Below are positions 10,881 through 31,507 of a stretch of 64,000 nt of DNA, in pieces. The notes beneath the pieces were generated by a model. The model ran no database searches. It had not been told where the DNA came from and saw only the letters and a list, made by a program, of their open reading frames with translations. A program made the position numbers and the translations under genes. The DNA lies in NCBI RefSeq assembly GCF_016433145.1, contig NC_058131.1, positions 106,341,301-106,405,300 on the forward strand, read 5' to 3'. Source of the stretch: Gracilinanus agilis (Eukaryota). How positions within the stretch are numbered: position 1 is the stretch's first letter; every line of letters starts with the position of its first letter.

Positions 10881-11306
10881 GTATTTACAGTTGAAGAAAT
10901 GATGCCTCACATCGAGCATCTGAAAGGGGCCCACAGTAAGAACCTGTTTCTTAAAGACAAAAGGAAGAAGAGCTATTGGCTGGTAACTGTCCTTCACGAT
11001 AGGAAGATTAACTTGAACGAGCTGGCCAAGCAGCTGGGTGTGGGCAGTGGCAATCTGAGGTTTGCTGATGAGACGTCCATGCTGGAGAAGCTCCGAGTGG
11101 GCCAGGGCTGCGCCACGCCCCTGGCCCTTTTCTGCGACCAGGGAGACGTGACGTTTGTCCTGGACGCCGCTTTTCTGGAAGGCGGGTATGAGAAGGTGTA
11201 CTTCCATCCAATGACCAACACAGCCACAATGGGCCTGAGCCCTCATGACTTTCTCACCTTTGTGAAGAAGACTGGGCATGACCCTATAATATTAAAATTT
11301 GATTAA
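10881..11306 (+). CDS. PRORSD1: PRORSD1 coding exon 2 (VFTVEEMMPHIEHLKGAHSKNLFLKDK...GHDPIILKFD*); spliced protein 169 aa, YbaK/ProX (PrdX, ProXp-ala) tRNA-editing domain
   Basis: Acceptor ccttcctgttttgtag| at 10880, in phase with exon 1. Family motifs KNLFLK and GCATP (GxxxP) are present. TAA at 11304-11306. Confidence 0.96.
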   Translation, partial: VFTVEEMMPHIEHLKGAHSKNLFLKDKRKKSYWLVTVLHDRKINLNELAKQLGVGSGNLRFADETSMLEKLRVGQGCATPLALFCDQGDVTFVLDAAFLEGGYEKVYFHPMTNTATMGLSPHDFLTFVKKTGHDPIILKFD

Positions 11307-22558: not shown

Positions 22559-23103
22559 TCATACACAACCATATTCATACCAAACAGTTTGATTATCCTC
22601 AGAGACCAATAATGGGGGTTCTATCTCACCAGGATTTAGACATGCAAGAGGAGTAATTTCACTGCTATTTAGAGACAACTGTGGCTTACTATTATTAGAT
22701 TTCTGGTTCTCAGAAGGCTGTTCATTATCTTTCTGTACAACTTGAAGTGATGAGACATATGTCTGATCATTAGTTTGGAAAGCTGGTCTTTGGGGTAACC
22801 CACTTATGTTACTAACTAATTCTGTATTCAAGGATAAAAATGGCTGGGCTAGATGACTCACAGAAAAGGGTCCTGCACTTTCATTAGCTAATACTCCTAC
22901 TGTGTCACTAAACACATTAATGGTTGCAAAGGATTTGTCATGAAAATTTGACCTTTCAGTTCTTGAATTTCTAGTCTGAGCAGAGGTAGACACAACATAA
23001 GCTGAGTGCATAGCTGTGGTTAAATCACTTTGTGAAAGGGAATCTAAAATATATGTGGAACTGTGAACTAAATTGGGGGGCTGTTGATGTACACAGTACT
23101 CAC
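22559..23103 (-). CDS. CCDC88A: CCDC88A long-isoform (GIV-L type) read-through extension ending EDNQTVWYEYGCV* (PDZ-binding motif)
   Basis: The frame stays open 545 nt past the gtgagt donor to TGA at 22559-22561. The terminus matches the Daple/GIV-L class motif. Confidence 0.88.
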
Positions 23104-23569
23104 TAGATGTTGATGGGGTGTTATCAGCTGTAGATGGTGATGGATCAACTGACACAGGCTGTCTACTGTCCTTGGACAAAAAGTCATGAATGCTTGTCCT
23201 TCGAGTAGTGCCCTCAGCTGTAGAGATGACACTGCTTGCACGAGGTAAAGTAGCATATGGGTTACTATCTTTTGATTGTCGTTGTGACACAGAGGTTTCT
23301 TTCACTAACTTGACCTTTCCTTGAGTGCTTGATGACGTAAGTTTTCCTGGAGAACCAATGAAGTAAGAATCTTCAGGCTTTCGAGGACTGGGCCTCACGA
23401 GCTGGTCAGCCTTAGTTGATCGTCCATCAGAAAAGTCAGCTATGGTTTTTCCACTTACTGACCTAACAAGACCACAGCTAACTGCCTTTTCTCTTCCCAT
23501 AAAATCAGGAGAGACAGATAAACTTTTCATTACTTCATCTAAAAGATTTTCTTGGCTTGAAGACTTCAT
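23104..23569 (-). CDS. CCDC88A: CCDC88A penultimate exon MKSSSQENLLDEVMK...EDSYFI...SNPYATLPR...TPSTS (short-isoform donor at 23104)
   Basis: ctacag|ATG acceptor and internal A|gtgagt donor. 466 nt, phase 0 to 1. The two PI3K-recruiting tyrosine contexts are recognisable. Confidence 0.94.
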
Positions 23570-28497: not shown

Positions 28498-28578
28498 CTT
28501 TGACATCATGGAGTGAAGCATTATTATTGCTATTACTAGTGGATGTTCTACCACTATCAAGACTGGCCGGCCTGGAAG
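28498..28578 (-). CDS. CCDC88A: CCDC88A exon (A)SRPASLDSGRTSTSNSNNNASLHDVK
   Basis: Read by hand. catttag|CT acceptor and G|gtatgc donor. 81 nt, phase 1 to 1. Confidence 0.94.
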
Positions 28579-28913
28579 CTAAATGAAAAAACAAACCAGG
28601 AGACAACATAAGATGTCCAATTCATGCAGATGCTCCTGAAAGCTCTGAGGTAGCAATCATGCACGATTTCACAGCTTGAGCATGCCCAATGTAACAAAAG
28701 ACTGGTTCTTTCTGACTAGAAAGAGGAAGAATTTCTAGGCTGTTCAAGAGGACATATTTCAGAAAAGAGCACTACTAGAAGAATAGTAGGATTTAAGGAA
28801 AAGGAAAAGAGAAAATGCACATATATTAAAAGTAAAAGTGGTAAGTTAGAACCAAATCTGCATTCGTTGAATAGAATGGCATGCAGAAAAATGCTGGTGA
28901 TCACATCACTTAC

Positions 28914-29000
28914 AACAGATCTGACAAGGAACCCTGCACATTGTAGCGATACCACGAACAGGAGGAGTATGAGCGTCTGCACAGTTAATGTCCAGTACTC
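28914..29000 (-). CDS. CCDC88A: Candidate alternative CCDC88A cassette exon (G)VLDINCADAHTPPVRGIATMCRVPCQIC(S)
   Basis: ttcccttatattggatag| acceptor and T|gtaagt donor. 87 nt, symmetric phase 1 to 1, and open in the Girdin frame. Three CpGs in a CpG-poor intron and three downstream TGCATG. No transcript evidence available. Confidence 0.7.
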
Positions 29001-29506
29001 CTATCCAATATAAGGGAAACAATTGCATTAAAAGTGTTCTCTGCTATTTTATTTGAAAAAAGGTAAAATATCTTTCAATAATAATAATGAATCCTTTTTT
29101 GAAAATGAAATTTGCCTATTCTAAAATGATTTATTTTATAAAGCAAAAAAGGTGTCTAATAATTTTTTTGAAATGGAAATTGGAATTAAAAAAAACCAGT
29201 AAACATCTAATTTATAACTTTATCCAAATACTGGTAAAACTGGCCAAACTCCCCCACCTCCATTTTTGGATCCTGTTCAGGCACACTTCATAAATGAAAA
29301 TGTCTAAAAATAGAGAACATTTAGATGAAGCAATATACTTTAGAAAGAAGTGTTAGAATTGGAGAAGTTACAATAGTCAAGAAATGTGTGTTATATAAAA
29401 AGTACATGCTTTTAAAAAATGCTATCATTCACCTATGTTATGCAACATTCTTAACATTCCCATTCTGCATTCACTATGCATTAACTAAATAAAGTCCACA
29501 TCTTAC

Positions 29507-29578
29507 CATGAGCTCTTGATCCAGTACTAGAATCATCACTAATACCTTGTGGACTTACATCTTCAAATGATGTGGCAT
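29507..29578 (-). CDS. CCDC88A: CCDC88A exon (D)ATSFEDVSPQGISDDSSTGSRAH
   Basis: Read by hand. gtgtag|AT acceptor and G|gtaaga donor. 72 nt, phase 1 to 1. Confidence 0.93.
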
Positions 29579-30383: not shown

Positions 30384-31335
30384 CTGGGATGCAAATGAAA
30401 GCAAATGAATAAGCATGGTTTAATGAATTTGTTTTTAATCCTATTTTGTATCTTAAACTGTGTGGCATTGGTCTATGCATCGATGTAACGGTATACAAAT
30501 GTTTTACAACCATAAGGTCACCCACATTAAGACATGCATTCAGCTGAATGAAAAGTGTTACAGAGGCCAAAGGTTGAATTTGTAGTGAATGTGTGTTTTT
30601 ACGTTTTAAGTTTTCCTTTGGCAGGCAGAGAAAGGTATTTACTTATGTACAACTTTCATGCTTTTGCTGTAATGATATGCAATATAGTTAGAAGCCTTGA
30701 TATGTTGTTTTGCAATGACAAAATGGAATGATTAAAGGTAAGATGGATAGAGTTTCTAATATAATATTAAAGTTGAAAATGGTAAAGAGTCCTTGGTCAT
30801 TGTAGATTACTGAAGGAATAAATTATTTGTATATCAAACAAACATTAAATTTGGGAAGAAAACTAGAAAACAATAGTATTCAAAGCCATGTACCTTTTAA
30901 AAAATTAATCACCCACTCTACTTTCTTTAGACCTAACAGAAGGTGTTACAAAAGAAGGAATGACAAACATTTTCAAGGGTCACAGACCTTTTATTTTTCT
31001 TGCATCAGATTACTTTAGAAAACCAATGCCTCAAACTAGCAATTTAGATACATTAAAAAAATAAAACTTGTTAAGGAATTCCCTATGGTATATAAATCCA
31101 GGTTTGGAGGGTTTTTTCTCCTCAGAGTTTAAATGCACTTAGAAACTTACACAACATGTATGTACTAAGCAAGTACACATATGTATATATGCATTAGTGA
31201 ACATGCATATAAATTTCAGTGCCAGGTTAAAAAAATGCTCCAGCTCCTTGTATTATAGGAAGACTGCACTTTGCAAAGTATGAAAATTAGTGCAGTCCAA
31301 GGAAAAAGGTTAGTGAAAAATTAGTAATGGAAGCC

Positions 31336-31507
31336 NNNNNNNNNNNNNNNNNNNNNNNNNNNNNNNNNNNNNNNNNNNNNNNNNNNNNNNNNNNNNNNNN
31401 NNNNNNNNNNNNNNNNNNNNNNNNNNNNNNNNNNNNNNNNNNNNNNNNNNNNNNNNNNNNNNNNNNNNNNNNNNNNNNNNNNNNNNNNNNNNNNNNNNNN
31501 NNNNNNN
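31336..31507. other. Assembly gap (172 N), probably containing a CCDC88A cassette exon
   Basis: Run of Ns. On the - strand it is immediately preceded by a polypyrimidine tract. Confidence 0.99.

Follow-up and report, generated by a model that had tools for sequence, protein, structure and literature searches.

A probable ancient cassette exon encoding a cysteine cluster in the C-terminal region of Girdin/CCDC88A

We analyzed a stretch of 64,000 nucleotides (nt) of Gracilinanus agilis DNA, referred to here as a whole as the window, and found that an 87-nt segment of its minus strand is probably a true alternative cassette exon of Girdin/CCDC88A and an ancient one, dating at least from the teleost-tetrapod ancestor. 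Girdin, or GIV, has been studied extensively as a scaffold connecting Akt, actin and G-alpha-i signaling, and membrane association is central to its function. An earlier note on this DNA had proposed an alternative exon from the single sequence. The evolutionary signature of such an exon is present in our comparisons: exon conservation, length and splice sites are kept from teleost to marsupial.

Location and structure of the segment within the Girdin gene

The large minus-strand open reading frames (ORFs) of the window match proteins named Girdin, Hook-related protein 1 or CCDC88A. On this strand the exons follow one another in the order ..QLVNNK (~30200), ..GSRAH (29578-29507), the cassette (29000-28914), ASRPAS..HDVK (28578-28498), AGAVNSQ.. 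(~25783-25510) and a last exon ending at 22562. The AGAVNSQ.. exon carries the GBA-type ..EVVTLQQFLEE.. sequence. As the earlier note had it, the cassette lies upstream of the GBA motif: the motif is in the next exon but one, and the insert falls ~115 residues before it. The features of the region are the following.

29507-29578, minus strand: upstream Girdin exon, 72 nt, phase 1-1, (D)ATSFEDVSPQGISDDSSTGSRAH, ending in ..GSRAH plus one base G
29001-29035, minus strand: acceptor region, with a TTTTAAT branch-point-like element (recognized by eye), the interrupted pyrimidine tract TTTCCCTTATATTGG and ATAG
29000-28914, minus strand: probable cassette exon, 87 nt, phase 1-1, encoding (G)VLDINCADAHTPPVRGIATMCRVPCQIC(S) as read and translated
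28869-28913, minus strand: donor GTAAGTGA and ~45 nt of conserved intron, containing UGCAUG at 28885-28880
28636-28699, minus strand: conserved intronic block with GGCAUG at 28686-28681 and UGCAUG at 28663-28658; 59-78% identity versus 36-67% in the flanking intron
28623-28628, minus strand: third UGCAUG, present in this genome only and absent from this place in the other loci
28498-28578, minus strand: downstream Girdin exon, 81 nt, phase 1-1, (A)SRPASLDSGRTSTSNSNNNASLHDVK

Between 29040 and 28900, the minus strand consists of a purine-interrupted pyrimidine tract, ATAG, the 87 bases of the segment (29000-28914) and then GTAAGTGAT. Across the two boundaries, marked here with slashes, it runs ...tttcccttatattggatag/GAGTAC...ATCTGTT/gtaagtgat. 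The elements first described for the segment, namely 87 nt in phase 1 to 1, an AG acceptor, a GTAAGT donor and the absence of a stop, were all present at these positions. With the cassette included, the Girdin frame reads G-VLDINCADAHTPPVRGIATMCRVPCQIC-S without a stop; 29 residues are added, and S takes the place of A at the junction. The cassette, with 3 CpGs, had an observed/expected CpG ratio of 0.59; the ratio was 0.20 for the intron and 0.15 for the whole window. The count of three CpGs in a CpG-poor intron was thus correct, but the statement that they had been kept was true of one: the CpG in CGT (Arg) is common to other mammals and birds, and the other two occur in this genome only.

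We scanned the 64-kb minus strand for segments with a YAG, a tract at least 60% pyrimidine, a GTRAGT donor and an open phase-1 frame, the length being a multiple of 3 between 48 and 200 nt. Under these rules, which were picked after the cassette had been seen, two segments passed: a real Girdin exon (34331-34221) and the cassette.

Both neighbors of the cassette (28498-28578 and 29507-29578) are themselves symmetric phase 1-1 cassettes and are alternative in other species. The 81-nt ASRPAS exon is alternative in primates, where the human brain cDNA FLJ42612 (P0065) and a Macaca protein (P0133) join ..GSRVH to AGAVNNQ. FLJ42612 also joins ..TKKSS straight to the TTSFED exon, and a deer gene model omits the TTSFED exon, which is the upstream exon at 29507-29578.

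Other features of the window were recorded alongside. An intact 135-amino-acid (aa) ORF (MMPHIEHLKGAH..ILKFD) lies at 10899-11306 on the plus strand, opposite to and downstream of Girdin; it resembles a gene of the PrdX/YbaK-type deacylase domain, and we take it to be PRORSD1-like. A run of N at ~31330-31500 falls inside a Girdin intron, and the window holds 172 N. The last Girdin exon (22562-23569, minus strand) is a single ORF through to ..QTVWYEYGCV-stop, as in GIV-L, the long read-through form with a C-terminal PDZ-binding motif that was described for human (PMC8042451).

Homologous segments in other vertebrates

A search with the translated segment yielded a first locus, L001, by way of a spurious ORF (P0001) on a genomic contig. 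The alignment of this contig to the window covers the cassette, the exon that follows and stretches of the intron. Further loci were reached through ORFs bearing the upstream exon (L002, L003/L004, L006, L008, L009, L010-L012 and the Gekko kuhli locus L007), and loci of the bird Acanthisitta chloris (L014) and of Tetraodon nigroviridis (L013) were added. We inferred whether a locus was of the eutherian, bird or squamate type by its flanking peptides, together with the named records of Acanthisitta, Gekko and Tetraodon. When protein representatives were searched with the cassette, the only hits were the P0001 cluster, made up of spurious eutherian-type ORFs, and the unrelated P0002, a 3878-aa protein without Girdin motifs.

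The homologous segment was present in 11 of 11 other loci spanning the intron. The set comprises Tetraodon, two eutherian-type mammals, five or six loci of the bird type, Acanthisitta among them, and two of the squamate type, one being the gecko. Relative to the window, the cassette was 78-89% identical in the tetrapod loci scored, the two flanking exons 84-93% (88-93% for the upstream exon, 29507-29578, against other vertebrates) and the intron outside conserved blocks 38-57%. Between the window and birds, identity of the cassette reached 86-89%, on par with constitutive exons. Among the bird-type loci themselves it was 98-99%, with introns at 77-85%.

Conservation extends into three flanks: the acceptor tract, ~45 nt past the donor and the 64-nt block at 28699-28636. 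The tract TTTCCCTTrTATTGGATAG is almost unchanged across mammals and birds; the acceptor region is 53-80% identical to that of the window, and the intron upstream of the acceptor 38-55%. Intron sizes are kept as well, at ~470-550 nt upstream (by coordinate subtraction) and, downstream, at 335 nt in the window and 336-374 nt in amniotes.

An open frame of 87 nt is common, and frame 0 of the segment is also open in most species, so that a chance pseudo-exon had to be considered. This idea is refuted by exon-level conservation in mammals, birds, squamates and a teleost within a surrounding intron that is unalignable, and we find it scarcely credible. Exonization of a transposable element (TE) was likewise rejected because the exon appears to predate the teleost-tetrapod split.

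Frame and splice sites by lineage

When compared across species, as the earlier note had proposed, frame and splice sites proved to be kept in the opossum, birds and Tetraodon, broken in squamate-type copies and weakened in eutherian-type ones. The state of the exon in each lineage was as follows.

Window, bird-type loci and Acanthisitta: AG acceptor, GTAAGT donor and an open frame of 87 nt with four Cys
Tetraodon: 87 nt bounded by cag/ and /gtaagtgac; most of the first 19 residues different, last nine MCRVPCNIC
Eutherian-type L001 and L008: 4-nt deletion resulting in a GTGACC donor; first Cys replaced by Ser; last Cys lost; an extra in-frame 3-nt deletion in L008
Squamate-type L006 (L006:3570-3656, approximate): TAG at codon 3; GCAAGT donor
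Gecko locus L007 (L007:7010-7094, approximate): 2-nt deletion; donor GT changed to AT (ATAAGT)

An AG acceptor was found in 11 of the 11 sequences scored. The window, L002, L009, L003, L010/L012, L014 and L013 agree in having an exon of exactly 87 nt, identical AG/GT boundaries and a Girdin frame free of stops. The length of 87 nt in phase 1-1 is shared by the window, L001, the birds, L006 and Tetraodon; the segment measures 84 nt in L008 and 85 nt in L007. The GTAAGT donor is present in the window, birds and Tetraodon (GTAAGTGAC being common to the last two), weakened in L001/L008 and lost in L007. In Tetraodon the first two thirds of the exon have diverged without an indel or a stop, and the MCRVPCNIC codons differ synonymously (AGG>AGA, CCT>CCA).

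In the eutherian-type lineage sampled, represented by two copies, the exon seems to be undergoing decay. The L001 and L008 cassettes are 91% identical, no better than the flanking intron at 94-100%, which suggests relaxed constraint in that lineage. It could be argued from this that birds and fish have a real exon, whereas in mammals, the present marsupial among them, it is vestigial or goes unused. The GTGACC donor created by the 4-nt deletion, the loss of two cysteines and the skipping of the cassette in all eutherian spliced transcripts and proteins agree with such a view. The window, however, has the acceptor, GTAAGT, the frame, all cysteines and the GCAUG sites intact, and an identity to birds of the kind seen in constitutive exons is unexpected after long disuse. 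We consider it unlikely that the exon is a relic in the marsupial as well.

In the two squamate-type copies, the exon is broken. Their cassettes are 85% alike, with introns saturated, and the frame breaks may be recent, may be errors or may reflect an RNA-level function that persists. The in-frame TAG of L006 and the frameshift of L007 are also what a poison exon would carry, one whose inclusion is unproductive and lowers Girdin output, and high nucleotide conservation of exon and flanks is typical of such exons. Against this, inclusion of the segment would preserve the frame and introduce no stop in the window, in the two eutherian-type copies, in six bird-type loci and in Tetraodon. L006 and L007 are alone in having a broken frame; 9 of the 11 sequences, like the window, keep it open. 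We regard an unproductive exon as very improbable and retain the frame-preserving cassette.

Skipping and inclusion in annotated proteins and transcripts

The annotated partial Girdins (317-1008 aa) all skip the cassette, with the exception of Tetraodon. The skipping fragments belong to human, apes, monkeys, whale, elephant, two birds, a turtle and a skink, and the skip form was seen both in spliced contigs and in named proteins. That canonical Girdin runs RVH-ASRPAS without the insert, as stated in the earlier note, agrees with the named human, ape, monkey, whale, bird and turtle fragments. The searches for homologous proteins spanned 0.55-1.75x the query length, a range outside which full-length XP_ isoforms fall. 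Within the same range, a search with an 80-aa inclusion peptide returned skip-form or genomic fragments and no inclusion fragment. Exon-junction patterns gave no match in metagenome and metatranscriptome contigs.

The Tetraodon exception is the GenBank Girdin model P0138 (GCA_000180735.1), which has a 29-residue insert at exactly this junction, ending in MCRVPCNIC. Like the window cassette, this insert corresponds to an 87-nt exon of the same length at the same junction. Unlike the tetrapod version, its N-terminal 19 residues are largely different; the model is automatic, and the insert may come from ab initio prediction. One automatic fish model thus already contains the exon, and predicted isoforms elsewhere may do so too.

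We also consulted a run index. The transcriptome-sized assemblies X24-X27 (with one or two organism labels) and the labeled metatranscriptome X28 hold 6 of 6 sampled cassette words. These five are absent among the listed holders of the surrounding 1301 nt, the kinds of library being guessed. The presence of cassette words without the surrounding 1301 nt is as expected of a spliced exon, a pattern that is suggestive only.

Two further observations concern the neighboring introns. In P0008 and P0009 (JGI contigs, eutherian-type RNA), the cassette-bearing intron is spliced out and the adjoining introns are still read through, which hints that the former is removed early. The Lerista edwardsae model P0131 carries a 38-residue insert after ..LHEVK (GFLQPNLIHW..), and this looks like intron read-through in the model, not a real exon. 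In the literature searched, we found no paper on this exon or its peptide, the GIV-L paper (PMC8042451) included.

Constraint on the coding frame and on the RNA

Over the whole exon, dN/dS ranged from 0.33 to 0.95, and dS between mammal and bird was unusually low (0.17-0.31). The constraint is therefore mostly at the nucleotide level and not clearly at the protein level. Nucleotide-level constraint is common in regulated alternative exons and is no proof of coding. Counted by eye, the cassettes of the window and L001 differ by 3 synonymous and 9 non-synonymous changes, and the next exons by 6 synonymous changes and 1 non-synonymous change.

RNAalifold predicted a hairpin at 28962-29003 (minus strand), in which exon bases ~29-39 pair with the acceptor AG and the 9 bases that open the exon. 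AGGAGTA pairs with TACTCCT, L001 has the compensatory AGGAATA/TATTCCT, and three pairs have changes on both sides. The single-sequence z-scores were modest, at -1.8 to -2.8 in mammal and bird, and the hairpin was not recovered in Tetraodon or L006. A hairpin of this kind, if real, could mask the 3' splice site and would account in part for the constraint seen at silent positions. A search of Rfam gave no match on the cassette at E up to 1 and only a sub-threshold snoU83 match elsewhere.

These results bring up another explanation, in which the segment is a conserved non-coding element acting at the RNA level, as a regulatory structure or a decoy for the neighboring alternative exons, and is rarely or never translated. 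Synonymous and non-synonymous sites are constrained alike, as the dN/dS values, the low dS and the counts against L001 (3 and 9, versus 6 and 1 in the next exon) indicate. The squamate-type copies are conserved despite their broken frames, which is unexpected under purely coding constraint. The double-sided changes and z-scores of the hairpin point the same way, and the segment is skipped in most annotations. However, from Tetraodon to opossum, AG/GT and the length of 87 nt persist despite divergence of the 5' two thirds, and the changes in the Cys-cluster codons are synonymous or conservative. Moreover, Rfam holds no match, the hairpin is missing in Tetraodon and L006, and a structure covering the acceptor is equally expected of a regulated exon. 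We find an element that escapes translation doubtful. A putative coding role of the cassette is favored by the length and frame kept in Tetraodon despite turnover, by the conservative changes in the Cys motif and by the insert in P0138.

A conserved cysteine motif at the end of the insert

Conservation at the protein level is confined to the C-terminal MC(R/K)VPCxIC, whose C-x3-C-x2-C pattern does not vary among the window, birds, L006 and Tetraodon. Except in the eutherian-type pair, every lineage has the three Cys codons of the motif unaltered, and the remaining codons differ by synonymous or conservative changes; the last Cys is Phe in L001. The first Cys of the insert stands at position 6 in tetrapods and at position 11 in Tetraodon, and it is Ser in L001/L008. 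The four-cysteine unit C-x14-C-x3-C-x2-C put forward in the earlier note therefore survives in part: the window and birds have four cysteines and C-x3-C-x2-C is conserved, but the position of the first Cys is not.

A metal site had been offered as one role for this unit. Because the first Cys is not positionally conserved, a C4 site is disfavored; with the first Cys shifting and the last being Phe in L001, four positionally conserved ligands are lacking, and the four-ligand zinc or metal site was rejected. Pfam and PDB searches with the insert returned no matching domain.

Inclusion would add the 29 residues to the disordered region between ..GSR(A/V)H and ASRPAS... The cassette presumably falls between the Girdin region known as membrane-binding and Akt-regulated and the GBA motif. 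In its hydrophobic and basic context, C-x3-C-x2-C is a candidate site of multiple S-acylation, which could tether the Girdin tail to membranes. We infer this step from the motif, and it is the weakest of the explanation. Among the titles and abstracts searched, no paper tied Girdin itself to palmitoylation of such a site.

GCAUG motifs downstream of the cassette

The three UGCAUG motifs said to lie 3' of the cassette were located, with TGCATG at 28885-28880, 28663-28658 and 28628-28623 on the minus strand; in addition, GGCATG stands at 28686-28681. From the density in the window, 0.09 TGCATG would be expected in the downstream intron of 335 nt, against the three observed (Poisson P ~1e-4). The GCAUG at about +30, +230 and +250 nt from the cassette are conserved in position across tetrapods, the one at ~+30 being kept in the window, L003, L010/L012, L006 and L007. 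The block at 28636-28699, ~+230/+250 from the cassette, is at the same time ~-105/-85 from the next exon.

Rbfox bound at a downstream (U)GCAUG promotes inclusion of neuronal and muscle cassette exons, which is an established positional rule. A weak, purine-interrupted acceptor, a strong donor and downstream GCAUG would thus be consistent with Rbfox-activated inclusion of the cassette in brain, heart and muscle, a mode of regulation that we infer from these motifs. The +230/+250 pair lies 85-105 nt upstream of the alternative 81-nt exon and therefore may shift the balance between both exons, in that it could favor the cassette and disfavor the 81-nt exon. No paper connecting Ccdc88a exons with Rbfox was found in the literature.

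Discussion

The segment is best read as a probable alternative exon of Girdin. Put together more tentatively, the observations could describe an ancestral, vertebrate-wide Girdin isoform that has never been studied. In such an account, a cassette of Rbfox tissues with acylatable cysteines, possibly exchanged for the Ser/Asn-rich exon, would anchor the GBA tail to membranes, and the switch would have decayed in the eutherian-type lineage sampled. We put this account forward as a possibility rather than as an expectation.

A conserved, optional Cys cluster at this place would be a new handle on the localization of the Girdin tail, especially in excitable tissues. Given the apparent decay in the eutherian-type copies, the model systems used so far may lack the ancestral isoform. 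If humans and mice share the decay, it would be explained why the isoform went unnoticed. Should the exon already be part of RefSeq or Ensembl isoforms, what we describe would be an isoform annotated yet unstudied.

Three known systems can be set beside the cassette. The first is the splicing already known for the C-terminal region of Girdin/GIV, which concerns the same gene and the same disordered tail and involves phase 1-1 neighbors. It differs in the exon concerned: the known forms are skipping of the ASRPAS..HEVK exon and GIV-L (PMC8042451), and the 87-nt exon is absent from the named mammal, bird and turtle fragments retrieved.

Peripheral membrane proteins with S-acylated cysteine clusters provide the second comparison. 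The cluster in the SNAP-25 linker is of this kind. As in SNAP-25-type clusters, the cysteines of the Girdin insert are 2-3 residues apart, accompanied by Pro and hydrophobic residues, and lie within a disordered segment. Unlike those clusters, to which it has no sequence homology, the one in Girdin is known from sequence alone.

The third comparison is with Rbfox-activated exons. The Girdin cassette differs from these in that its GCAUG motifs also precede a second alternative exon, on which they may act instead, and in being known by its motifs. It resembles them in having several GCAUG within 300 nt downstream that are conserved in position, a weak acceptor and high nucleotide conservation of both the exon and its flanks.
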